Below are positions 2,967-37,700 of a stretch of 64,000 nt of DNA, piece by piece. The position numbers were made by a program, and so were the translations under genes. The notes beneath the pieces were generated by a model. That model did not search any database. It was given only the letters and a program-made list of their open reading frames with translations, and had not been told where the DNA came from. Each line of letters begins with the position of its first letter. The first letter of the stretch is position 1. This DNA is from Auanema rhodensis (lineage: Eukaryota; Animalia; Nematoda), in assembly GCA_964057225.1 (NCBI GenBank), contig OZ059894.1:15376001-15440000 (forward strand), read 5' to 3'.

Positions 2967-5900
2967 ATGGGTACGTTTGACAAAGCGACGGTATCCAAAG
3001 CTAGACTTTGTGGATGGCAAAATCTATTAGCAATGGTCATTGCCATTATAACTTCATTATTTCTTGGAGCATCTCTATCATGGTATTTTACTCAAAAATC
3101 ACTAACTCCTTCAAATAACAGGTGGGTTCAGAGTGTTAGAGTATAGTATAATACATATACATATAATATATAATTTAGTCTATCTATCTACTTTGTTTTT
3201 GTTTTGTTTTTAAGTTTTTTGCATTAAACTTTACTTTCATAGATGATTAACTTATTTAAAAATTAGTTACAGAATAAGTAGAGACGTTACCAAGTATGTT
3301 AGCATGTTGAATATTTAGTTTTTCATTTTTGTCTTTGTTTTTTTGTATGTAAAGAGTGTTCATGTGGCTTGGAAATGTTTTAAAAGTTTGAAGTTTCCGC
3401 TTTCGACTGTCTAGACATGATTTTTGAGATGCTAATGACAATTCAAATTATTTGCTTTTTTCAGTAATGAAAGTCCAAAAACTGATATGGGGCCATCAGC
3501 TGCTGAATTAAGGTTACCAAGAAGTCTCAATCCATGTTCGATTTGTTTATTTATAAATTGATGAAATAATATGATTTTCAGTAAGTTATGATCTAACCAT
3601 TCAAACATACTTGCCAGGTTATGTGGATATACCAAAAGAGAAAAACTTAACTTTTGATGGACAAGTGCAGTAGTATTACAATAAAATAATTTAATTTTAA
3701 TAATTTAAGGTTACTATTAATCTCGTAACTCTTACATCTCTAAGAAAACTTGTTTTTAATGCCAAAAATCTTAAAATTAATGAAACGAAATGCAATCTAA
3801 CGGTGGTACGCTGATTATATTATTATTATAAGATATATTTTTATATTTATTTAAGGATGGTCAACCCCTTGGAATCAAAAGTGTTGTTCTTCAGCCTCAA
3901 TTTGAAAAGGTTGCTTTCGATTTAGAAGGCGATATCAAGTCAGGCGCCAATGTAGAGTTAAAGGTTTTGCAAATAAGCTCAAGTTGTCAACGAATATTAA
4001 TAATTTATTCAGATTGGCTACACTGGTTTGATTAACAGCAACCTTGGTGGTCTTTATCAAGCAGCTTACGTAAGTGCAGATGGAACTCCAAAGTAACCTG
4101 AAGAAGAAAGAATGATGTTTGTGTACTATTTGATATTCTAGAATTGCTGCTGTAACTCAAATGGAGTCCACAGATGCACGTCAGATGGTTCCATGCTTAG
4201 ATGAACCAGCATACAAAGCTAATTGGACAGTCACTGTTATTCATCCAAAGGGAACAAATGCAATTTCCAACGGATATACCCTTGATAGCAAAGCGTAAGT
4301 GATTTCCATCCGAGCATGTGAAGTATATTCCACAATTTATCAAAATCTTAGTTGTCTAAGCAATTGGGAAATATAATATTTTTACTTTTCAGTGTAAATG
4401 ATAATTTCATTATCACTACCTTTGAACCAACACCAAAAATGTCTAGTTATCTCCTGGCTATTATAGTTAGTGACTTCCAATCAGTTAAAGCTAGTGGAAA
4501 CCATAAAGTTGAGGTATGTTATTTCTTATTTGATCCAACTTATTTGGATGGATATATTCGTTCAGTTCCGAGTCTGGGGAACAGAACAAGGCAAGGAATA
4601 TTTGACATATGCTGCTGAGATGGGACAAAAATGTTTGGAGTTTTATGAAGATTATTTCAAGATTCCTTTCCCTCTTAAGAAAATGGGTAATTTTGATATA
4701 AATTATGATATCATCACTATTTGGCTTCAGACATGGTTGCTTTACCTGACTTCGCTGCTGGAGCTATGGAAAACTGGGGTCTTATTACATATAGGTGAAT
4801 ACAATTTGTTTTTGAAACAAGGTCAATATGTTTTCAGAGAGACTAGTTTGTTATACAATCCCGCTTTGTGGCCACCTCAACAGAAGAGAAGAGTGGCTGT
4901 TGTAATCGCCCACGAGCTGGCTCATCAGGTAAGAGGATTTTCCAAAGTTTTTTGAAAATTTAATTCATAGTGGTTCGGTAATTTGGTTACTATGAAATGG
5001 TGGGATGACCTATGGCTTAATGAAGGATTTGCCACCTATGTTGAATACATTGGAACCAATCACATCAGTGATGGAAACTTCAGAATGGTTTATTAAGACA
5101 ATTAACCAAAAATATTCAATAATTTAGAATGAATACTTCATCGAGCGAGCTCTTAATACAGCTTTTGATGCTGACAATCAAGCTTCTAGTCATCCACTCT
5201 CTTTCAAAATTGACAAAGCTTTTGAAGTTGCTGAAGCATTTGATTCTATTTCTTATGAAAAGGTATATTTTTATTTTTTTAATTCAATAAAACAAATATT
5301 TCAGGGAGGTAGCATCCTTCAAATGATTAAACATGTTATGACAGAAGAGAAATTCAACGATGGAATATATGTGAGTGCTTGTTTGATTATGTACACAACA
5401 GATGAGAGTGTCTACAAACTTTTGACGTTCGTATATCGTGGCCGAATGGTCTAGGGGTATGATTCTCGCTTTGGGTGCGAGAGGTCCCGGGTTCAAATCC
5501 CGGTTCGGCCCAAATTTTTTATTTTTTGTTTTATAATTAGAAGAAATTGTGGTTGAAGGAGATATATTTGATATTTTACTTTTTAAGGAATATTTGAATG
5601 CTCATAGTTACGGAAATGCTGAAGCTTCTGACTTATGGGTTGCCCTTAATAACCACTCAACTGTGAAAGGTCCAGGTGGAACTCAGCTTGATATCCCTCA
5701 ATTCGCCAGTCAATGGACTGTACAGGTATATACATTCTAATATTACGTATAGGATGTTTATTTTCTTGTGTTAAGATGGGATATCCGTACTTAACAGCAG
5801 AGCAGTACAACGAAACCGCGGTTAAAGTATATCAAACTAGATATAAACTCAATCAAGCTGCCCACGAAAAAGAAAAATATGCTAATCCAATCTACAAGTA

Positions 5901-22007: not shown

Positions 22008-23519
22008 TTACAGGGGAATTCCGATTATTTTATACAACAAGTATTCCTGAAAAGCTAGTTTGTCGTCTTTACGCATGCTTTGGTATTCCTTATATGTAAA
22101 AACTTTGTGTAATGATATTGTATCCGTAACCTGATCCCACATATTATACTGAAATGAATATACATAGTTAACTGAAATGATTGTTTGTCATTCTAACTTT
22201 GAAATGCCCCATGTCGTATTTCCATAAGAGCAGAATTCGTTCACTTATACCCAATCTCGAGCTGCTCAATAAAAATTCACCACAGGAACATAAAGCTCTT
22301 TCCATCTTGAAAATAAAGGCAACTCTGCTAAGTCGTTTGACATTTTCATCTGAAAAAATTTCAAAAATCAAACAAAAAATCAGAAAATATAAAATTACCA
22401 GTAATATGGTAACTGTAACCATATAATATATTGAATACGTTCAGAATATCATCGAATTCTAAGTTTTTAATATTTATAATAATTTCTCTTTTTTTCTGGA
22501 GTAAAACTCTTATATAGTTGATAATGATAATCAAAACCAACAGCGACATCCTCAGTTTCATTGCTATTCACACTTCCTTCTTGATCTACTTGTTTTGATG
22601 TATCGTCATTTTCGTCGTCTTCGTCATCTTCGTGATCTGTGTCCTATAACATATGGAAATATATACTCATTCAAATTTGAATTTACCATGGATACATCCT
22701 TTGTATCAATTTTATCGTTTTGCTTGTAATTCTTAAGTTTTGCAAAATCAAAATTCTTTCCTGTACTATGAATTACAAAAAATACTAAATTTAGCAATGA
22801 CTACCTTCCATCAAATCTTTCATAACCGAAGAATGAACAGATAAAATCTTAAAGATAATAAAATTTATCTCAACAACAATCAAAATACCTGTGAGTGGCA
22901 GTATAACTTATTCTCTCCGAAGGAAACGGCAATATCCCAAGAATCAGATTCCGAAATTTTTAACTGAGAAGATATTTGTCTATAAAAAACATATTGAACA
23001 TATATTTGGAAATATCCAAATTTACTCAAAACTATCAAAACGTAGGATATTAGCTACGACAGAAATAGAGTCTCCACCCTTTAACTGATATCCTCCGCCC
23101 CACTCTTTGAATACTAAAGCTTTATTTCCAAGCCCATTAACAAGTACCTAAAAAATATCTATTCCAACACTTTCGACCAGCATGAAAACCTCATTTATAA
23201 AACATTTCATATTAACTTGAGCGTTGAATCCAGTGTGGTTGTATTGTTTTAAAGTTTGATACCATAAATACAATATCGGATTTTGTGTTTTGTCTGTAAA
23301 CAATTTTATTTCAAATTAAAACTTCTTTTATTTTTAAATTATGATAAAATATAATCTTGCCTTCATCCTTTGCCTTCACACATCTGAAAACATTTGAATC
23401 TCAAATCTAAAACCTTGTTTTCAAACTTACAGTGCTATGAAGTCATTTTTAAACAAAACAGGAACTTTTCTTTCTTGCTCTAGATCATCCGAACATTTAT
23501 ATTCGAAAAAAAATGACAT
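22008..23519 (-). CDS. BTB/POZ adaptor protein with a divergent (MATH-like position) N-terminal domain, copy A
   Basis: Intact spliced ORF: MSFFFEYKCSDDLEQERKVPVLFKNDFIAL-CVKAKDE-DKTQNPILYLWY...; BTB core SWDIAVSFGENKLYCHSQILSVHSSVMKDLME...EIIINIKNLEFDDILNVFNILYGYSYHITDENVKRLSRVAFIFKMERALCSCGEFLL; ends YKIIGIPL*. Contains one GC-AG intron. Confidence 0.88.
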
Positions 23520-23607
23520 CTGATTATAAATATGATTAATATCAGCATAATATAATATAATCAACAAATTAATTTAATGAGCTCGAAGACTATAATGATA
23601 GTATATT

Positions 23608-23678
23608 GTTTCGTAATAATTCGTTTCGTAATATTAGTTTCGTAATATTCGTTTCGTAATAATTCGTTTCGTAATAAT
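23608..23678. repeat. Minisatellite, ~5 copies of GTTTCGTAAT(A)ATTC, unique to copy A
   Basis: gtttcgtaataattc gtttcgtaatatta gtttcgtaatattc gtttcgtaataattc gtttcgtaataat; replaced by unrelated sequence in copies B and C. Confidence 0.9.
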
Positions 23679-23730
23679 AAAACAAAAAAAATTAATTTCC
23701 AAATAATAAAAAGTTTCATAATTTCATTTC

Positions 23731-23928
23731 ATAGTCAGATATCATTTTTTTTTAAATATGAATGTTCAGATGATCTCGAGCAAGAAAGAAAAGTTCCTGT
23801 TTTGTTTAAAAATAAAAGAAGTTTTAATTTAAAATAAAATTGTTTACAGACAAAACACAAAATCCGATATTGCATTTATGGTATCAAAATTTAGAATTTA
23901 GAAAAAGAATACAAAGACATTCGACTCA
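23731..23928 (+). pseudogene. Inverted 5' fragment of the BTB gene (arm A; ATG mutated to ATA, internal deletion of exon 2)
   Basis: Reverse complement of ~23256-23530. The deletion falls between two TTTAAAAAT microhomologies. Confidence 0.88.
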
Positions 23929-23977
23929 TCTGACATTTATTAAGTAATTTATTTATATTATAATATATAAATGTTTC

Positions 23978-24512
23978 GGTTCTTTTTCCGTTTCTATACC
24001 CCCCGATTTTAGCCCCGCCCCTTTTGCCGTTGGGCGCATACTTTTCTACCATTCGGCTTCCCTTCCTAAAACGGGGGGGTTTGGGGGGGTTTCCCCCCCT
24101 ATGGGGATATCTATAATAAGTGTAATAAACCTTGAATATATTATGATATAAAAACTAAATCATTATTGGTTATTGCATCTACATTATCAACCATTTTTTG
24201 TCTAAATGTTTGCTCCAAAAGAACGGCTTCTTACTGAAGCTGATGCCATTCAATTCTTGCAAGAAAAAGGTATAGTCTTTGAGACTAACGAATGTGAGCG
24301 ATGTTAACGAAAAATGAGTCTTTCTTTTGCTCGAAATAAGTCGAGATGTACCATAAAAGACTGTAGAAGGAAAATTCTAAAAAAAATGGAACATTTGTGG
24401 ATATCTGGATACCACCGTATCTCATATAGGTATCACATTTTAATAAAAGTATGTGCCTAACGGCAAAAGGGGCGGGGCTTAAGACGGGGGGTATAGAAAC
24501 GGAAAAAGCGCC
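23978..24512 (+). mobile_element. Non-autonomous Merlin (IS1016/ISXO2-like) DNA transposon, internal deletion derivative
   Basis: 8-bp TSD AATGTTTC at 23970-23977 and 24513-24520; ~65-70 bp imperfect TIRs, 5'-GG..CC-3'; empty site (tataAATGTTTCaaatac) in copies B and C. Degenerate ORF from 24206 MFAPKERLLTEADAIQFLQEKGIVFETNECERC*RKMSL...RCTIKDCRRK resembles the N-terminal zinc finger of Merlin transposases. Confidence 0.88.
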
Positions 24513-24650
24513 AATGTTTCAAATACTACAATAATAATTAGAAAAAAACATTAAAATAATTATTTCATAATACCCGTTGAACATGGAATCGTTGTAGCCT
24601 AGTATAGGCTTTTGAATTAATTAAATAATTAAAAATTCTCAATAAAATGA

Positions 24651-25818
24651 TTACTTTTCTGTGGACAACTTGTCTATCATATATTCGACGGTTTTTTGTA
24701 CTTCCTCATCATTTTCATCTGTTTTGCACGTCGTTTCTTTTAGTTCCTGTGAATTAGGAAGTTGATGATCGTTGTTTAGAGAATTACAAGTGAATACAAC
24801 TTTCATCTGATGATCTTTTTTAAGATTACGATGCTGTAAATGGTGAAATGATTTAGAATCCTTCATAGTAAGAATACTCACTCTTGGTTTAGATATGGCA
24901 ATCATCAGGAATATTGGAAGGAATAGTAATCCATGAATCATCGAGAAACTAATAACTAGGAACACTGTCTTGAAAAAAATTAAAACTATATATGAATCGA
25001 CAAGGGTTAACACCAGAATTCCTAAAAGGGTTGACGATGCTCCCTAAAATATATCTTCATGACTGTTGGGCAAACGATTTTCCCAGCTTACCAAGAATAC
25101 AGGCCAACCCAATGTCTCTAAAGATTGAACCACTCGTTCATGAGGATCACCATACGCTTGTGAATACGCATAAGCTATATGAGCAGATAAATCAACAGCA
25201 AAGCCAATGCACATTATGACCTTAAAGTGTAAAATTTCAATTTTCTCTTCTATAAAGTTACTCGGATACCTACCGTAATCATTGAGACACTATCAAGATT
25301 TACACCCCAGAAAGACATATAGCCAAGAACACCTATATAAGTGTATAATCATTAGAAATATGAAATATTATTCTTACCTATGTTAATACTGGCAATAGCT
25401 AATACTACAGCACAAGCTGCTCTGAAGTCTGGAATCATTATGACTGTTACCAAGAACATTGAACCTAGACCCAGAATGAAATTTTGAGATAAAGAAGGTT
25501 TAAGCTCCAAATACTAAAATACATGAACGATATGATAGAGCAAGGTAATAATAGTTCATACCTGATCAGCAAATGGATAGTATTCATGGAAAGTTGTTAC
25601 ATTGAACTGTGAGTACTTTGATGCTATTTCTCTCATAAGTTTACAACTATTTGTATGATCTGTCGGAGTTGCATAGTTACGCAAGCCTAGTTGGAATCGG
25701 AACGCTTTGAGCTTATAGAAATCCTTCAATGAACATTACAGTATATGAACGAAGAATTAGAAATAAACCTCAGGCTGCTTTCCCCAAACCATGTCCATTT
25801 CCCATAATCGTCTACCTC
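24651..25818 (-). pseudogene. 3' fragment of the patched-related gene (copy A, 5'-truncated)
   Basis: Near-identical to 34748-35899; breaks at the 25817-25818 junction. Confidence 0.9.
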
Positions 25819-25975
25819 TCCTAGAAAATCTCTTTCTACTAATTTGAAGAAAAAGGAGTCTCCAATGAAAGTTAGTTATCTCTTCTCTTCTTGAAATATA
25901 CATACGTTTCAGAGAACTACATTTGCTATAGCCAAAAAGAAAAAAATTGATAACAATAATGAAATCATAGACTAA
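25817..25975 (+). pseudogene. 3' fragment of the nhj-1-like gene (copy B)
   Basis: Matches 21732-21890 (SPRKSL...EIID*); no 5' exons. Confidence 0.85.
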
Positions 25976-26092
25976 ACTTCTAAAATATTGGCATTTACCT
26001 AACTAGTTTCATTACAATCTTTAAACTCATCCTAACTGTTACAGTTTTAAATAGTAAGTATTATATTACAATATGCCTTCACCCATAATCAG

Positions 26093-27580
26093 TTACAGGG
26101 GAATTCCGATTATTTTATACAACAAGTATTCCTGAAAAGCTAGTTTGTCGTCTTTACGCATGCTTTGGTATTCCTTATATGTAAAAACTTTGTGTAATGA
26201 TATTGTATCCGTAACCTGATCCCACATATTATACTGAAATGAATATACATAGTTAACTGAAATGATTGTTTGTCATTCTAACTTTGAAATGCCCCATGTC
26301 GTATTTCCATAAGAGCAGAATTCGTTCACTTATATCCAATCTCGAGCTGCTCAATAAAAATTTACCACATGCATATAAAGCTCTTTCTATATTGAAAATA
26401 AAGGCAACTCTGCTAAGTCGTTTGACATTTTCATCTGAAAAAATTTCAAAAATCAAACAAAAAATCAGAAAATATAAAATTACCAGTAATATGGTAACTG
26501 TAACCATATAATATATTGAATACGTTCAGAATATCATTGTGTACTATGTTTTTAATATTTATAATAATTTCTCTTTTTTTCTGGAGTAAAACTCTTATAT
26601 AGTTGATAATGATAATCAAAACCAACAGCGACATCCTCAGTTTTAATGACTTTTACACTTCCTTCTTGATCTTCTTGTTTTGATGAATCCTTATCTGTGT
26701 CCTATAACATATGGAAATATATACTCATTCAAATTTGAATTTACCATGGATACATCCTTTGTATCAATTTTATCGTTTTGCTTGTAATTCTTAAGTTTTG
26801 CAAAATCAAAAATCTTTCCTGTACTATGAATTTCAAAAAATACTAAACTTGACAATGACTACCTTTCATCAAATCTTTCATAACCGAAGAATGAACAGAT
26901 AAAATCTTAAAAATAATAAAATTTATCTTGACAACAATCAAAATACCTGTGAGTGGCAGTACAACTTATTCTCTCCGAAGGAAACGGAAATATCCCAAGA
27001 ATCTGATTTCACAACTTCTAACAACAGAGTAGATAGTTGTCTATAAAAAACATATTGAACATATATTTGGAAATATCCAAATTTACTCAAAATGTTCGAA
27101 AGCTACGATAGTAGCTGCGAAAGAAATGGATTCTCCACCCTCTAACTGATATACTTTCCTAGTCCTGTTGTATACTAAAGCTTCATTTTCACGCTGTACA
27201 ACAAGTTTCTAGAAAATATATATTTCAACACTTTCGACCAGCATGAAAACCTCATTTATAAAGCATTTCATATCAAATCGAGCGTTGAGTCGAATGTCGT
27301 TGAATTTTTTTAAACTTCCATACCATAAATGCAATTTCGGATTTTCTGTTTTGTCTGTAAACAATTTTATTTTAAATTAAAACTTCTTTTATTTTAAAGT
27401 TATGATAAAATATAATCTTGCCGTTTAGCACTGTATCCGCATATCTGAAAATATTTGAATCTCAAATCTAAAACCTTGTTTTCAAACTTACAGTGCTATG
27501 AAGTCATTTTTACACAAAACAGAAGCTTTTCTTTCTTGCTCTAGATCATACGAACATTTATATTTGAGAAGAAATGACAT
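26093..27580 (-). CDS. BTB/POZ adaptor protein, copy B (chimera: 5' part as C, last exon as A)
   Basis: Intact spliced ORF MSFLLKYKCSYDLEQERKASVLCKNDFIAL-YADTVLN-DKTENPKLHLWYGSLKKF...; last exon identical to copy A. Confidence 0.88.
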
Positions 27581-27760
27581 CTGATTATAAATATGATTAA
27601 TATCAGCATAATATAATATAATCAACAAATTAATTTAATGACCTCGAAGAGGACTTCTCTCTCTTTTTATACGTCGTGAATGAAGTTATGAAAGTTTTTA
27701 ATCATAAAACAAACAAAAAAATTAATTTCCAAATTATAAAAAGTTTCATAATTTCATTTC

Positions 27761-28075
27761 ATAGTCAGATGTCATTTCTTTAAAATATGAATGTTCAGAT
27801 GATCTAGAGAAAGAAAGAAAAGTTCCTGTTTTGTTTAAAAATGACTTCATAGAACTGTAAGTTTGAAAACAAGGTTTTAGATTTGAGATTCAAATGTTTT
27901 CAGATGTGTAAAGAAGGCAAAGAATGAAGGCAAAATAATATTTTATCATAATTTAAAAATAAAAGAAGTTTTAATTTAAAATAAAATTGTTTACAGACAA
28001 AACAGAAAATCCGAAATTGTATTTATGGTATCAAAATTTAGAATTTAGAAAAAGAATACAAAGACATTCGATTCA
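27761..28075 (+). pseudogene. Inverted 5' fragment of the BTB gene (arm B; exons 1-3 with introns, frameshift at codon 5)
   Basis: Reverse complement of ~27290-27590; atg tca ttt ctt taa (1-nt deletion); exon 2 reads CVKKAKNE. Confidence 0.9.
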
Positions 28076-28253
28076 TCTGACATTTATTAAGTAATTTATT
28101 TATATTATAATATATAAATGTTTCAAATACTACAATAATAATTAGAAAAAACATTAAAATAATTATTTCATAATACCCGTTGAACATGGAATCGTTGTAG
28201 CCTAGTATAGGCTTTTGAATTAAATAAATAATTAAAAATTCTCAATAAAATGA

Positions 28254-31079
28254 TTACTTTTCTGTGGACAACTTGTCTATCATATATTCGACGGTTTTTT
28301 GTACTTCCTCATCATTTTCATCTGTTTTGCACGTCGTTTCTTTTAGTTCCTGTGAATTAGGAAGTTGATGATCGTTGTTTAGAGAATTACAAGTGAATAC
28401 AACTTTCATCTGATGATCTTTTTTAAGATTACGATGCTGTAAATGGTGAAATGATTTAGAATCCTTCATAGTAAGAATACTTACTCTTGGCTTAGATATG
28501 GCAATCATCAGGAATATTGGAAGGAATAGTAATCCATGAATCATCGAGAAACTAATAACTAGGAACACTGTCTTGAAAAAAATTAAAACTATATATGAAT
28601 CGACAAGGGTTAACACCAGAATTCCTAAAAGGGTTGACGATGCTCCCTAAAATATATCTTCATGACTGTTGGGCAAACGATTTTCCCAGCTTACCAAGAA
28701 TACAGGCCAACCCAATGTCTCTAAAGATTGAACCACTCGTTCATGAGGATCACCATACGCTTGTGAATACGCATAAGCTATATGAGCAGATAAATCAACA
28801 GCAAAGCCAATGCACATTATGACCTTAAAGTGTAAAATTTCAATTTTCTCTTCTATCAAGTTACTCGGATACCTACCGTAATCATTGAGACACTATCAAG
28901 ATTTACACCCCAGAAAGACATATAGCCAAGAACACCTATATAAGTGTATAATCATTAGAAATATGAAATATTATACTTACCTATGTTAATACTGGCAATA
29001 GCTAATACTACAGCACAAGCTGCTCTGAAGTCTGGAATCATTATGACTGTTACCAAGAACATTGAACCTAGACCCAGAATGAAATTTTGAGATAAAGAAG
29101 GTTTAAGCTCCAAATACTAAAATACATGAACGATATGATAGAGCAAGGTAATAATAGTTCATACCTGATCAGCAAATGGATAGTATTCATGGAAAGTTGT
29201 TACATTGAACTGTGAGTACTTTGATGCTATTTCTCTCATAAGTTTACAACTATTTGTATGATCTGTCGGAGTTGCATAGTTACGCAAGCCTAGTTGGAAT
29301 CGGAACGCTTTGAGCTTATAGAAATCCTTCAATGAAAATTACAGTATATGAACGAAGAATTAGAAATAAACCTCAGGCTGCTTTCCCCAAACCATGTCCA
29401 TTTCCCATAATCGTCTACCTCCAGCTATGAGTAACCAGTCTCGACAACGTTCATACCATTCAAAAGATCTAAATTCAATAAAGTATAGACTGATTCATGT
29501 TGAGATAACTTACGAATTTGGTTTTAAAATGTTCAATTCTCTCATTTCCTTTTCAAGATGAAATTCGTATGCTTTAAGCCAAATCATGGTAGCATTTGAA
29601 GACATAGTGTAGTCTGTGTCCTCAAAATCTTGAAAACTTATAATTGTGAAAAACGAGATTAATTGTACTTCGAAAAGGCAGATACTAACTTAGAAACTAA
29701 CCATCTAGCATGAATTGAAACTCTGCTCTGTTTACAGGATCAAATAAATCAGGTGGATTATTGACAACAACTTGCATTTGCAAACCTTAATTTACAAAAT
29801 TTGATATCATTTCAGTTTTTTGAACTTACCTTCTTGCCAGAATGTTTCTTGGATTAGAGAATAGAAGTTGCTAAGATAGAAACTGTCTCGAACAAGAAAT
29901 TTAGGATCTAATCCTTCTTGAATGTTAATACAACCAAATATGGCTAATCCAATATAAAGAACATATAATAGAAAAGCGCAAACCTCAAAATAAAATGACG
30001 TCAGAAATTTTAAAAGAAAGGGTACCTGAGTGCTTCGTTCTAATACAAATGGTCCGATAATATTACGAAACAACTTGTTAACCAACGTTTTCTCCGAATC
30101 ATCTTCCTATAACCGGATAGACTAGTTTCTTTCTTTAGCAACTCTTCTCAAACCGTTTGATGTTCTTCCAATTTATGCTCTAGTTTCTTGAAGAAGCCTT
30201 CGTGATGTATATTTTCTAAATCTTTCTTCTTTTCGGTATTGTTGTTGTTATTCAATTGCTTTTCAGATATTTTGCCCTTATTCTTTGAAGTTTTGCCTCC
30301 AAGGAAGAATAATTTCCATTTGGAATCTAAAAATGAAATAAAACATTTGTTATCAGATAATTGAAACGTACTGGTAGAATCTGAAGATATAGCCTTATGG
30401 TATGTCATAGAATGTATATCGTTCTCTTCCAAAGTAGCAGCATATGATAGAATAGGAGAGAAGAATGTAAGCTTAAAGAAATTATATATTATATAAATTA
30501 AAAAAAAAATTAAAAAATACCTGGTAAATATATGTAAATACTACTTGGATTGAGGTATACAAACAGAACATTCGAACTCCTGGTAATGATGTAAATGTAC
30601 CAATCCCGAATGTCATCTATTATTAAGTTAACATATAAATAATTATAAATATATAATTTACAATATCTGTAATTGAAGTGATTGTAATGGCTACAGCAGC
30701 TTCACTCAATGTATGTGCTACACGTTCAGCAGCTGAATGTTCTGGATTTGTTCTATGCCATTCAGCTGACATAATGAACAGGTCATCAATTCCAATACCT
30801 TAAACAATATATTGATAATATTTAAGTAATTATAAGTATAAATTTTAAATTTGAGTTGTTCAAAATATTTAAAGAACTTACATAATACAAGGAAAGGTGA
30901 AACATTAACAATGGCATTATAGAGTTCACCAACCCACAACAGTAATCCAAAAGATGTAACGATGGCTAGAAGTGGGCAAAGAATACCTTAATATATTTTT
31001 TATTTGACTAATTGTTTGAATACAAAGTTTGAAAGTATTCTTACCCGCTAAGGCAACTAATGGCTTACTACGGACCCAA
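28254..31079 (-). pseudogene. 5'-truncated patched-related gene (copy B), starting inside the sterol-sensing region; in-frame ATG available at 31129
   Basis: Matches 34748-37573; homology ends at ...cggacccaa (31079). It could be translated, so the pseudogene call is tentative. Confidence 0.8.
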
Positions 31080-32586: not shown

Positions 32587-34074
32587 TTACAGGGGAATTC
32601 CGATCATTTTATACAGCAAGTATTCCTGAAAAGCTAGTTTGCTGTCTTTACACATGCTTTGGTATTCCTCATTTGTGAATACTCTGTGTAATAATTTTGT
32701 ATCCTTAACCTGATCCCACATATTATACTGAAATGAATATACATAGTTAACTGAAATGATTGTTTGTCATTCTAACTTTGAAATGCCCCATGTCGTATTT
32801 CCATAAGAGCAGAATTCGTTCACTTATATCCAATCTCGAGCTGCTCAATAAAAATTTACCACATGCATATAAAGCTCTTTCTATATTGAAAATAAAGGCA
32901 ACTCTGCTAAGTCGTTTGACATTTTCATCTGAAAAAATTTCAAAAATCAAACAAAAAATCAGAAAATATAAAATTACCAGTAATATGGTAACTGTAACCA
33001 TATAATATATTGAATACGTTCAGAATATCATTGTGTACTATGTTTTTAATATTTATAATAATTTCTCTTTTTTTCTGGAGTAAAACTCTTATATAGTTGA
33101 TAATGATAATCAAAACCAACAGCGACATCCTCAGTTTTAATGACTTTTACACTTCCTTCTTGATCTTCTTGTTTTGATGAATCCTTATCTGTGTCCTATA
33201 ACATATGGAAATATATACTCATTCAAATTTGAATTTACCATGGATACATCCTTTGTATCAATTTTATCGTTTTGCTTGTAATTCTTAAGTTTTGCAAAAT
33301 CAAAAATCTTTCCTGTACTATGAATTTCAAAAAATACTAAACTTGACAATGACTACCTTTCATCAAATCTTTCATAACCGAAGAATGAACAGATAAAATC
33401 TTAAAAATAATAAAATTTATCTTGACAACAATCAAAATACCTGTGAGTGGCAGTACAACTTATTCTCTCCGAAGGAAACGGAAATATCCCAAGAATCTGA
33501 TTTCACAACTTCTAACAACAGAGTAGATAGTTGTCTATAAAAAACATATTGAACATATATTTGGAAATATCCAAATTTACTCAAAATGTTCGAAAGCTAC
33601 GATAGTAGCTGCGAAAGAAATGGATTCTCCACCCTCTAACTGATATACTTTCCTAGTCCTGTTGTATACTAAAGCTTCATTTTCACGCTGTACAACAAGT
33701 TTCTAGAAAATATATATTTCAACACTTTCGACCAGCATGAAAACCTCATTTATAAAGCATTTCATATCAAATCGAGCGTTGAGTCGAATGTCGTTGAATT
33801 TTTTTAAACTTCCATACCATAAATGCAATTTCGGATTTTCTGTTTTGTCTGTAAACAATTTTATTTTAAATTAAAACTTCTTTTATTTTAAAGTTATGAT
33901 AAAATATAATCTTGCCGTTTAGCACTGTATCCGCATATCTGAAAATATTTGAATCTCAAATCTAAAACCTTGTTTTCAAACTTACAGTGCTATGAAGTCA
34001 TTTTTACACAAAACAGAAGCTTTTCTTTCTTGCTCTAGATCATACGAACATTTATATTTGAGAAGAAATGACAT
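32587..34074 (-). CDS. BTB/POZ adaptor protein, copy C
   Basis: Same as B except the last exon (YNMWDQVKDTKLLHRVFTNEEYQSMCKDSKLAFQEYLLYKMIGIPL*). Confidence 0.88.
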
Positions 34075-34254: not shown

Positions 34255-34569
34255 ATAGTCAGATGTCATTTCTTTAAAATATGAATGTTCAGATGATCTA
34301 GAGAAAGAAAGAAAAGTTCCTGTTTTGTTTAAAAATGACTTCATAGAACTGTAAGTTTGAAAACAAGGTTTTAGATTTGAGATTCAAATGTTTTCAGATG
34401 TGTAAAGAAGGCAAAGAATGAAGGCAAAATAATATTTTATCATAATTTAAAAATAAAAGAAGTTTTAATTTAAAATAAAATTGTTTACAGACAAAACAGA
34501 AAATCCGAAATTGTATTTATGGTATCAAAATTTAGAATTTAGAAAAAGAATACAAAGACATTCGATTCA
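34255..34569 (+). pseudogene. Inverted 5' fragment of the BTB gene (arm C)
   Basis: Same as arm B at offset 6494. Confidence 0.9.
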
Positions 34570-34747
34570 TCTGACATTTATTAAGTAATTTATTTATATT
34601 ATAATATATAAATGTTTCAAATACTACAATAATAATTAGAAAAAACATTAAAATAATTATTTCATAATACCCGTTGAACATGGAATCGTTGTAGCCTAGT
34701 ATAGGCTTTTGAATTAATTAAATAATTAAAAATTCTCAATAAAATGA

Positions 34748-37700
34748 TTACTTTTCTGTGGACAACTTGTCTATCATATATTCGACGGTTTTTTGTACTT
34801 CCTCATCATTTTCATCTGTTTTGCACGTCGTTTCTTTTAGTTCCTGTGAATTAGGAAGTTGATGATCGTTGTTTAGAGAATTACAAGTGAATACAACTTT
34901 CATCTGATGATCTTTTTTAAGATTACGATGCTGTAAATGGTGAAATGATTTAGAATCCTTCATAGTAAGAATACTCACTCTTGGTTTAGATATGGCAATC
35001 ATCAGGAATATTGGAAGGAATAGTAATCCATGAATCATCGAGAAACTAATAACTAGGAACACTGTCTTGAAAAAAATTAAAACTATATATGAATCGACAA
35101 GGGTTAACACCAGAATTCCTAAAAGGGTTGACGATGCTCCCTAAAATATATCTTCATGACTGTTGGGCAAACGATTTTCCCAGCTTACCAAGAATACAGG
35201 CCAACCCAATGTCTCTAAAGATTGAACCACTCGTTCATGAGGATCACCATACGCTTGTGAATACGCATAAGCTATATGAGCAGATAAATCAACAGCAAAG
35301 CCAATGCACATTATGACCTTAAAGTGTAAAATTTCAATTTTCTCTTCTATCAAGTTACTCGGATACCTACCGTAATCATTGAGACACTATCAAGATTTAC
35401 ACCCCAGAAAGACATATAGCCAAGAACACCTATATAAGTGTATAATCATTAGAAATATGAAATATTATACTTACCTATGTTAATACTGGCAATAGCTAAT
35501 ACTACAGCACAAGCTGCTCTGAAGTCTGGAATCATTATGACTGTTACCAAGAACATTGAACCTAGACCCAGAATGAAATTTTGAGATAAAGAAGGTTTAA
35601 GCTCCAAATACTAAAATACATGAACGATATGATAGAGCAAGGTAATAATAGTTCATACCTGATCAGCAAATGGATAGTATTCATGGAAAGTTGTTACATT
35701 GAACTGTGAGTACTTTGATGCTATTTCTCTCATAAGTTTACAACTATTTGTATGATCTGTCGGAGTTGCATAGTTACGCAAGCCTAGTTGGAATCGGAAC
35801 GCTTTGAGCTTATAGAAATCCTTCAATGAAAATTACAGTATATGAACGAAGAATTAGAAATAAACCTCAGGCTGCTTTCCCCAAACCATGTCCATTTCCC
35901 ATAATCGTCTACCTCCAGCTATGAGTAACCAGTCTCGACAACGTTCATACCATTCAAAAGATCTAAATTCAATAAAGTATAGACTGATTCATGTTGAGAT
36001 AACTTACGAATTTGGTTTTAAAATGTTCAATTCTCTCATTTCCTTTTCAAGATGAAATTCGTATGCTTTAAGCCAAATCATGGTAGCATTTGAAGACATA
36101 GTGTAGTCTGTGTCCTCAAAATCTTGAAAACTTATAATTGTGAAAAACGAGATTAATTGTACTTCGAAAAGGCAGATACTAACTTAGAAACTAACCATCT
36201 AGCATGAATTGAAACTCTGCTCTGTTTACAGGATCAAATAAATCAGGTGGATTATTGACAACAACTTGCATTTGCAAACCTTAATTTACAAAATTTGATA
36301 TCATTTCAGTTTTTTGAACTTACCTTCTTGCCAGAATGTTTCTTGGATTAGAGAATAGAAGTTGCTAAGATAGAAACTGTCTCGAACAAGAAATTTAGGA
36401 TCTAATCCTTCTTGAATGTTAATACAACCAAATATGGCTAATCCAATATAAAGAACATATAATAGAAAAGCGCAAACCTCAAAATAAAATGACGTCAGAA
36501 ATTTTAAAAGAAAGGGTACCTGAGTGCTTCGTTCTAATACAAATGGTCCGATAATATTACGAAACAACTTGTTAACCAACGTTTTCTCCGAATCATCTTC
36601 CTATAACCGGATAGACTAGTTTCTTTCTTTAGCAACTCTTCTCAAACCGTTTGATGTTCTTCCAATTTATGCTCTAGTTTCTTGAAGAAGCCTTCGTGAT
36701 GTATATTTTCTAAATCTTTCTTCTTTTCGGTATTGTTGTTGTTATTCAATTGCTTTTCAGATATTTTGCCCTTATTCTTTGAAGTTTTGCCTCCAAGGAA
36801 GAATAATTTCCATTTGGAATCTAAAAATGAAATAAAACATTTGTTATCAGATAATTGAAACGTACTGGTAGAATCTGAAGATATAGCCTTATGGTATGTC
36901 ATAGAATGTATATCGTTCTCTTCCAAAGTAGCAGCATATGATAGAATAGGAGAGAAGAATGTAAGCTTAAAGAAATTATATATTATATAAATTAAAAAAA
37001 AAATTAAAAAATACCTGGTAAATATATGTAAATACTACTTGGATTGAGGTATACAAACAGAACATTCGAACTCCTGGTAATGATGTAAATGTACCAATCC
37101 CGAATGTCATCTATTATTAAGTTAACATATAAATAATTATAAATATATAATTTACAATATCTGTAATTGAAGTGATTGTAATGGCTACAGCAGCTTCACT
37201 CAATGTATGTGCTACACGTTCAGCAGCTGAATGTTCTGGATTTGTTCTATGCCATTCAGCTGACATAATGAACAGGTCATCAATTCCAATACCTTAAACA
37301 ATATATTGATAATATTTAAGTAATTATAAGTATAAATTTTAAATTTGAGTTGTTCAAAATATTTAAAGAACTTACATAATACAAGGAAAGGTGAAACATT
37401 AACAATGGCATTATAGAGTTCACCAACCCACAACAGTAATCCAAAAGATGTAACGATGGCTAGAAGTGGGCAAAGAATACCTTAATATATTTTTTATTTG
37501 ACTAATTGTTTGAATACAAAGTTTGAAAGTATTCTTACCCGCTAAGGCAACTAATGGCTTACTACGGACCCAATCAATTGCAATAAATCCATTTCCATGA
37601 TTAATCAGTACAACACAAACGGCGAAACAAAATGTGAAGAGAATTGTACATGTTCCTAAAATATATTGAATACTGATGTTGAATAGTTTGAAGTTACAAA

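Follow-up and report, generated by a model that had tools for sequence, protein, structure and literature searches.

The window analysed here is a stretch of 64,000 nucleotides from the nematode Auanema rhodensis (assembly GCA_964057225.1, contig OZ059894.1, positions 15,376,001 to 15,440,000 of the forward strand), and all positions below are counted from its first letter. It contains three BTB-like genes, A, B and C, each of which faces an inverted and disabled copy of its own start, about 320 bp long, lying upstream of it. Comparison of the window with itself showed that genes and copies belong to a tandem array, in which the unit consists of a minus-strand gene, its inverted copy (the arm) and part or all of a minus-strand neighbour, gene X. 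An earlier note, made from the letters of the window, had proposed that gene and arm exchange short tracts and that the arm is a local reservoir of variants for the gene. The structure of the arms, the evidence for exchange and the role proposed for the arms are considered here.

All three BTB-like genes lie on the minus strand, are intact and have 11 exons each. The gene model was derived from contigs of run X16, which are spliced with GT..AG ends on the minus strand and so identify X16 as an RNA run. These contigs formed part of a comparison of 5,991 letters (22100-28090) with contigs from this one RNA run and from three DNA runs, which carry three organism labels. The introns of gene A are 41-49 nt long, apart from the 67-nt intron 2. 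Exon 2 is a micro-exon of 23 nt followed by an intron with GC-AG ends, both in the RNA contigs and in the model, and over exon 3 the RNA contig is identical to gene A. These splice features are of a nematode-like kind, and in date and type the public runs agree with a 2019 study of A. rhodensis, from which DNA of two inbred strains and many RNA libraries came (PMC6469403). The reading of the exons in the earlier note (CVKAKDE, CVKKAKNE and DIR) was borne out by contigs and model alike. Introns of 21-29 nt, an altered genetic code and three pseudogenes had also been considered and are ruled out by the joints in the RNA, with their 41-49-nt introns and GC-AG intron 2. When the model of gene A was projected onto B and C, intact proteins of 337 aa were obtained and every splice site was kept. 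Micro-exon 2 occupies 23361-23383 in A, 27422-27444 in B and 33916-33938 in C; the GC donor after it is present in all three genes and is retained in the arms of B and C. The transcript contig of gene A ends about 2 nt before the ATG, directly after TCAG, which would fit addition of a splice leader.

Gene A is fully covered by the RNA contigs of X16. In the same run, in contig form, depth is zero over arm A, the spacers between genes and arms, arm B and the 5′ half of gene B (and hence of C). The whole part of gene B that is identical to C (26300-27699) is at zero contig depth, and genes B and C may be silent or expressed at particular stages.

The assignment of the genes to the BTB family is plausible but unproven. 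Language-model features of exon 10, used as a single-exon query, point to BTB/BACK clusters (0.88-0.91); the same feature search with exons 9 and 4 gave no match. A Pfam search with eight single exons also found no match, as did a query with exon 10 in the PDB and among 1.84 billion representative sequences, and a word-index search with an 84-aa open reading frame gave no lead.

Units B and C follow each other at a period of 6494 bp and share 99.6% of their letters over 5.3 kb; their palindromes agree letter for letter, without a change in 786 bp. The pairing of gene and arm, which the earlier note gave for each of three genes, is therefore present at three loci, but because B and C are identical across the palindrome these amount to only two independent cases. 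Gene B itself is chimeric: its 5′ part, as far as exon 10, equals C, and the remainder, which starts with exon 11 and reaches the end of the unit at 25817, equals A, the match to A beyond exon 10 being carried by 18 diagnostic sites (25817-26335 region). At 25817 unit B ends abruptly and is joined to a truncated copy of gene X; among the contigs listed, none bridges the junction 25817/25818. To judge from the letters, the chimera appears to mark a recent recombination or conversion between units, which indicates that ordinary recombination with long tracts operates between units here.

The sequence copied in the arms comprises the trans-splice site, exon 1 and micro-exon 2, each with the intron that follows it, and two thirds of exon 3. 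In the alignment of genes and arms (alignment A1), homology runs from column 82, which is 4 nt before the ATG, to column 393, about 69 nt into exon 3. Identity between gene and arm over these columns is 87.6-93.6%, below the near-identity of homogenising palindromes; by BLAST, gene B is 88.3% identical to arm B over 282 bp and gene A is 92.7% identical to arm B over 289 bp. The inverted, disabled copy of exons 1-3 that had been described upstream of the start codons was thus found at all three loci, with the ATG of the gene and the ATG or ATA of the arm separated by 219 nt in A and by 188 nt in B and C. As inverted repeats, the palindrome of B comprises 27440-27565/27783-27908 and 27308-27422/27929-28043 (126 and 115 nt, 92%), and the same pair recurs shifted by 6494 bp. 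The palindrome of A comprises 23247-23338/23805-23896 (96%) and 23445-23530/23728-23813 (91%).

Both arms stop at the same base and then run into the same flank, and both carry in exon 3 a frameshifting slippage insertion of 10 bp (23893-23902 in A, 28040-28049 in B). The other lesions differ between the arms. In arm A the start codon is ATA (23739-23741) instead of ATG, and 118 bp, from the end of exon 1 to most of intron 2, have been deleted at 23804/23805, where there is a 9-nt direct repeat; exon 2 is consequently not comparable in this arm. Arm B/C has lost 1 nt after codon 2-4, which leads to a stop at codon 5, and has gained 3 nt in exon 2 (27910-27912 in B). Each arm is, therefore, a partial gene copy, adjacent and inverted, with introns included and with disabling lesions, and the lesions that distinguish arm A from arm B/C indicate that the arms decayed independently. 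The positions of the features are collected in Table 1.

Table 1 Features of the BTB-like loci in the window
Feature	Positions	Strand	Basis or remark
Gene A, BTB-like, 345 aa, intact, expressed	22008..23519	-	Splice joints of RNA contigs (run X16), model translated
Palindrome A, gene-side arm: 4 nt before ATG, exon 1, intron 1, micro-exon 2, intron 2, first ~69 nt of exon 3	23225..23523	-	Alignment A1, columns 82-393
Spacer A, 219 nt	23520..23738	.	
Arm A, disabled inverted copy	23735..23928	+	
MITE-like insertion (MITE, miniature inverted-repeat transposable element)	23978..24512	.	Absent from units B and C
Gene B, 337 aa, intact	26093..27580	-	
Palindrome B, gene-side arm	27286..27584	-	Alignment
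Spacer B, 188 nt	27581..27768	.	
Arm B, disabled inverted copy	27765..28075	+	
Gene C, 337 aa, intact	32587..34074	-	5′ part identical to gene B
Arm C	34259..34569	+	Identical to arm B, 6494 bp further on

Several other origins of the arms were rejected. A retro-copy is ruled out by the presence of introns 1 and 2. The palindrome is not a transposon either: its gene-side arm is simply the gene, and the sole mobile element is the MITE outside arm A. A separate origin in each unit is ruled out by the common end-points, flank and 10-bp insertion, and these features, together with the fact that the arms are each other's closest relatives (see below), point to a single origin before the tandem amplification.

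A palindrome extending through the spacer was also rejected, as the two halves of the spacer are no more alike than shuffles (p 0.29 and 0.57), except for one 10-mer. This self-complementary 10-mer, AAATTAATTT, is found about 46 nt upstream of the gene starts and about 40 nt upstream of the arm starts in every unit (23560-23700, 27620-27730 and in C), and could be a binding site or what is left of a longer palindrome. A 15-bp tandem repeat of 4.9 copies (23608-23678) occupies the middle of spacer A and is missing from spacers B and C.

It is probable that the dead inverted gene starts go back to one old fold-back duplication and are ordinary partial inverted duplicates, not a machine for diversification. 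In a single ancestral fold-back event, ~320 bp at the start of the transcribed part (splice-leader acceptor to the middle of exon 3) would have been duplicated and placed head-to-head about 190-220 bp upstream of the gene. With exons 4-11 missing, the copy would have been dead on arrival, and it has probably had no function since. It would then have gained the 10-bp slippage insertion and been amplified in tandem as part of a unit of gene and neighbour gene, after which the arms would have decayed independently in each unit.

The relationship between genes and arms was assessed at those 183 columns to which both genes (A and B) and both of their arms contribute a letter; 27 of them are variable. 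The two arms are the closest pair, differing at 9 of the 183 columns against 15-19 for any pair of gene and arm, which supports the single origin. Gene A differs from arm A and from arm B at 15 columns each, gene B from arm B at 17 and from arm A at 19, and gene A from gene B at 20. Neither gene is thus appreciably closer to its own arm than to the other (15 vs 15 and 17 vs 19). Both genes are set against both arms at three sites (columns 107, 115 and 380), in addition to the shared insertion and two sites at which only the arms agree. However, five of the 27 variable sites are incompatible with a tree that separates genes from arms: at three of them (columns 95, 323 and 333) each gene agrees with its own arm, and at two (columns 338 and 390) the agreement is crosswise. 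The shared letters to which the earlier note had drawn attention are present among them, namely TTT/CTT at codon 4 (column 95, which depends on where the 1-nt gap of arm B is placed), CAA/GAA (column 323), ATA/AAA (column 333) and the swap of TAT and CAT (column 338). All the incompatible sites are in exons 1 and 3, and those in exon 3 alter amino acids.

When evolution without exchange was simulated with the observed branch lengths, the mean number of incompatible sites was 0.4-0.8 and the probability of five or more was 0 to 0.002, even with a gamma shape of 0.2. The five sites observed exceed the expectation from homoplasy, and some micro gene conversion is therefore supported. Furthermore, five of the nine differences between the arms are at sites where the genes also differ (hypergeometric p = 9e-4). 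The outer arm segment (23805-23977 vs 27952-28124) has only four differences (23858, 23868, 23873 and 23925), and these are exactly own-arm and crosswise sites. The genes differ at 15 of 114 columns, and each of the four is among these and has the same two letters (hypergeometric p = 2e-4). No pair was significant in a runs test of the Sawyer type (p ≥ 0.08). The comparison thus supports the suggestion that genes and arms have exchanged very short patches.

Two further crosswise patches cited in the earlier note can also be seen: exon 2 of arm B/C (CVKKAKNE) does resemble that of gene A (CVKAKDE), and "gacattcga" is common to both arms and gene B. Conversion is not needed for either, as both are explained more simply by an older state having been kept in the arms and in one of the genes. 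That note had named, as the outcome which would speak against it, arms that form one clade with homoplasy behind the shared letters and no mosaics in population data. The arms are indeed the closest pair, but the five sites break the one-clade pattern to a degree beyond homoplasy. The contigs of the three DNA runs contain no new mosaics of gene and arm, although contigs drop rare variants and the strains may be close.

It is unlikely that there has been no exchange at all and that the discordant sites are parallel mutations at hypermutable positions or the result of cross-talk between repeats during polishing of the assembly. It is true that there are only five such sites, three of them T/C transitions and one dependent on the alignment, that the runs test was not significant, and that at 23925 all three DNA runs have T where the window has C. 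Against this, the probability of five sites without exchange remains at or below 0.002 in the simulation with a gamma shape of 0.2, and the outer segment is nearly free of changes private to an arm, which makes parallel change in the arms unlikely. Columns 323, 333 and 338 lie within 16 nt of each other, and the four haplotypes are each found in independent contigs with no other letters.

The T at 23925 may be accounted for by the contigs themselves. The DNA contigs match the genes and arms, and within the arms they differ from the window only at 23873 (one run) and 23925 (all three runs), in both cases with the letter of arm B/C. In run X8 the contig concerned also skips the MITE, which shows that it is a contig of B/C type placed on arm A. 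In the other two runs the contig depths at 23925 are 502.7 and 166.2; assuming that the contig spans 23874-23977, these are near the values of about 518 and 164 expected if arm A differs from arm B/C here, and disagree with those expected if it is the same, 610 and 198. With the same span assumed, the T fits a contig of arm-B/C type left after removal of a bubble.

The likely direction of transfer was deduced from the ages of the parts. The outer arm segment together with its 1.3-kb flank (the gene X fragment) is 99.5-99.7% identical between units, while the introns of the genes are about 97% identical, which implies that the outer arms shared an ancestor recently. At the divergence of the flank, 0.5-0.9 differences would be expected in the 173-nt outer segment and four are found (p 0.002-0.015). 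None of the four is private to an arm; all copy letters by which the genes differ. As the genes had already diverged when the outer arms shared their ancestor, these letters most probably passed from the genes into the arms, in one case or more from the gene of the same unit and in one case or more from the other unit.

The variability of the genes themselves is unevenly distributed. Between A and B/C, divergence is 8% in exon 1, 52% in exon 2, 15% in exon 3, 29% in exon 4, 12% in exon 5 and 13% in exon 8, whereas the introns differ at only 14 of 474 positions (~3%). For residues 1-113 the non-synonymous divergence (dN) is 0.288 and the synonymous divergence (dS) 0.078 (ratio 3.7); over the remaining residues dN/dS is 0.081/0.062 (~1.3) for A vs C and 0.060/0.036 (1.7) for A vs B. 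The extreme case is micro-exon 2, where 12 of 23 bases and all seven residues differ between A and B/C, against 1 of 47 and 3 of 67 positions in the introns on either side. The B/C form of this exon has no look-alike in either arm or elsewhere in the window. When the arm is used as outgroup, most changes are placed on gene B/C, and a cluster of three on gene A, which is the reason why "gacattcga" is common to both arms and gene B. Exons 4, 5 and 8 are variable as well, and these lie beyond the arm, which ends in the middle of exon 3. The variability of the genes is thus better explained by positive selection than by templating from the arm.

A positively selected N-terminal part is also a property of CUL3 adaptors of the BTB and MATH-BTB type, although the MATH identity of the N-terminal part of the present genes is only putative. 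Positive selection in nematode ubiquitin-ligase adaptors is already known, at least in the account given of the work of Thomas (Thomas 2006, Genome Res 16:1017; reference 33 in PMC5392922). The nematode MATH-BTB and BTB adaptors of CUL3 resemble the present genes in their tandem clusters, fast-evolving N-terminal substrate-binding part and conserved BTB part; the difference is that membership of the present gene in this group is only putative. To our knowledge, no role of pseudogene arms is described in the 2006 work of Thomas on BTB adaptors.

Under the fold-back reading, therefore, positive selection would have driven the N-terminal exons of the genes apart, mostly on the B/C lineage, and the arms would now be fossils of older gene states. 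A few very short conversion patches, of 1 to at most ~60 bp, would have passed between genes and arms, both within and between units, with the arms most probably the recipients. A number of points weigh against this account. The case is built on four independent sequences and five discordant sites, with column 95 subject to the placement of a gap, and no single tract is significant. The number of separate minute patches that must be assumed, three or four as a minimum, is high for a stretch of this length. Transfers from arm to gene could be concealed at sites peculiar to one gene, and members of the family elsewhere in the genome could be the true donors. The argument on direction presupposes that the outer arms and flank are so alike because they separated recently, and the silence of the arms was judged from one RNA data set, in contig form only.

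Diversification templated by a pseudogene, in which the arm would serve its own gene as a silent donor close at hand and pass variant tracts to the hypervariable N-terminal exons, is quite unlikely. Such a role would agree with the statistical support for exchange between gene and arm, with the five shared sites in exons 1 and 3, amino-acid-changing in exon 3, and with the positive selection on this region of the gene; moreover, the sites at which gene A or gene B stands alone could be transfers from arm to gene and not retained older states. However, each gene has a single donor of ~320 bp, and the arms are less diverse (9 of 183) than the genes (20) that they are supposed to diversify. A reservoir for the arm's own gene should leave an excess of own-arm likeness, and this is absent, both in the pairwise differences and in the split of three own-arm against two crosswise sites, so that this part of the proposal is not upheld. 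The 12 changed bases of the B/C micro-exon are without a donor in the window, exons 4, 5 and 8 are as variable or more so outside the arm, and the timing points to transfer from gene to arm. B and C have remained the same across the 786 bp, and no new mosaics came from the three DNA runs. A search with tblastn found no other copies in the window that could form a silent donor repertoire. With one donor, uncovered variable exons and no new mosaics, the resemblance to pseudogene-templated diversification that had been suggested is not supported.

It is very unlikely that the arm owes its retention to a two-way trade in micro-tracts with a positively selected domain for substrate recognition, as a small local archive from which older alleles could be returned to the gene. 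This would be templated diversification in a minimal form, with one cassette, in an animal ubiquitin-ligase adaptor. Were the diversifier idea true, templated diversification of a nematode ubiquitin-ligase adaptor would have its first example here, in the form of a very small device.

A regulatory role of the arm is highly improbable. In one version, transcription by read-through or from a divergent start would yield an RNA, either a hairpin of ~300 bp or an antisense transcript, by which small RNAs would control the BTB genes; in another, the mirrored spacer would be a bidirectional promoter. As a single strand 27290-28075 does fold into one long hairpin (-378 kcal/mol, z -35), each unit has the 10-mer at 40 nt before the arm start and 46 nt before the gene start, and the arrangement survives in all three units. 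However, the X16 contigs that cover gene A are without depth at both arms (A and B) and at the spacers, and no transcript that includes the two arms of a palindrome was found among them (one data set, in contig form). Rfam gave no family match, the arms differ in deletions and insertions as expected without constraint, and survival at a young age needs no selection.

The fold-back duplication can be compared with several known systems. In Caenorhabditis, adjacent inverted paralogues such as the hsp-16 modules undergo interlocus conversion with tracts reaching into introns; the tracts are 12-2958 bp long, with minimum tracts of 3-9 bp in fog-2/ftr-1 (PMC3966223). Like those paralogues, the present copies are head-to-head, a few hundred bp apart and show short surviving tracts, but here one partner is truncated and dead, identity is 88-94%, the patches are very short and there is next to no homogenisation. 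In 2003 Katju and Lynch reportedly treated young nematode gene duplicates of the partial and inverted kinds. The present arm is likewise a short, adjacent, inverted copy of part of a gene, introns included, and dead on arrival; it differs in having been amplified within a 6.5-kb tandem unit and in lying beside a positively selected domain.

Templated diversifiers, such as the V pseudogenes of chicken immunoglobulin, trypanosome VSG, Borrelia vlsE and Neisseria pilE/pilS, draw on many diverse donors, transfer sequence in one direction only, into the expressed gene, and do so at high somatic or clonal rates. A silent truncated copy near an expressed variable gene, with short patches in common, is what the present locus shares with them; here, however, there is one donor, transfer is probably reversed and there is no variation among samples. 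The human Y palindromes P1-P8 have arms more than 99.9% identical, with intact genes and conversion from arm to arm. These too have inverted arms around a short spacer and intrachromosomal conversion between arms, but the present arms are 88-94% identical and 0.3 kb long, and one side is dead.

The comparison supports the view that the locus is a further, ordinary example of a dead partial inverted duplicate with occasional interlocus conversion that has been amplified with its gene. The arms provide an outgroup within the genome by which changes in the fast N-terminal exons, mostly on the B/C lineage, can be polarised. The locus also offers a clean, small example of micro conversion between inverted repeats of ~90% identity outpacing point mutation.

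The neighbouring gene X, on the minus strand, is carried in every unit (24513-25818, 28117-31079 and 34611-37573). It is expressed, as a spliced RNA contig of 2.9 kb was found; the copy in unit A is a 3′ fragment of 1.3 kb only. The MITE-like element just outside arm A, and outside arm A only, is 535 bp long with inverted ends of ~64 nt and an 8-bp target duplication, AATGTTTC; a contig joint from 23969 to 24513 has 8 shared letters. Contig depth over the element is about 10 times that of its flanks, which suggests a multi-copy family, and some copies have an internal difference of 59 nt (24164-24224). The longest open frame of the window, at 4470-4955 (161 aa), contains the zinc-peptidase motif HELAH and resembles an exon of an M1 aminopeptidase.

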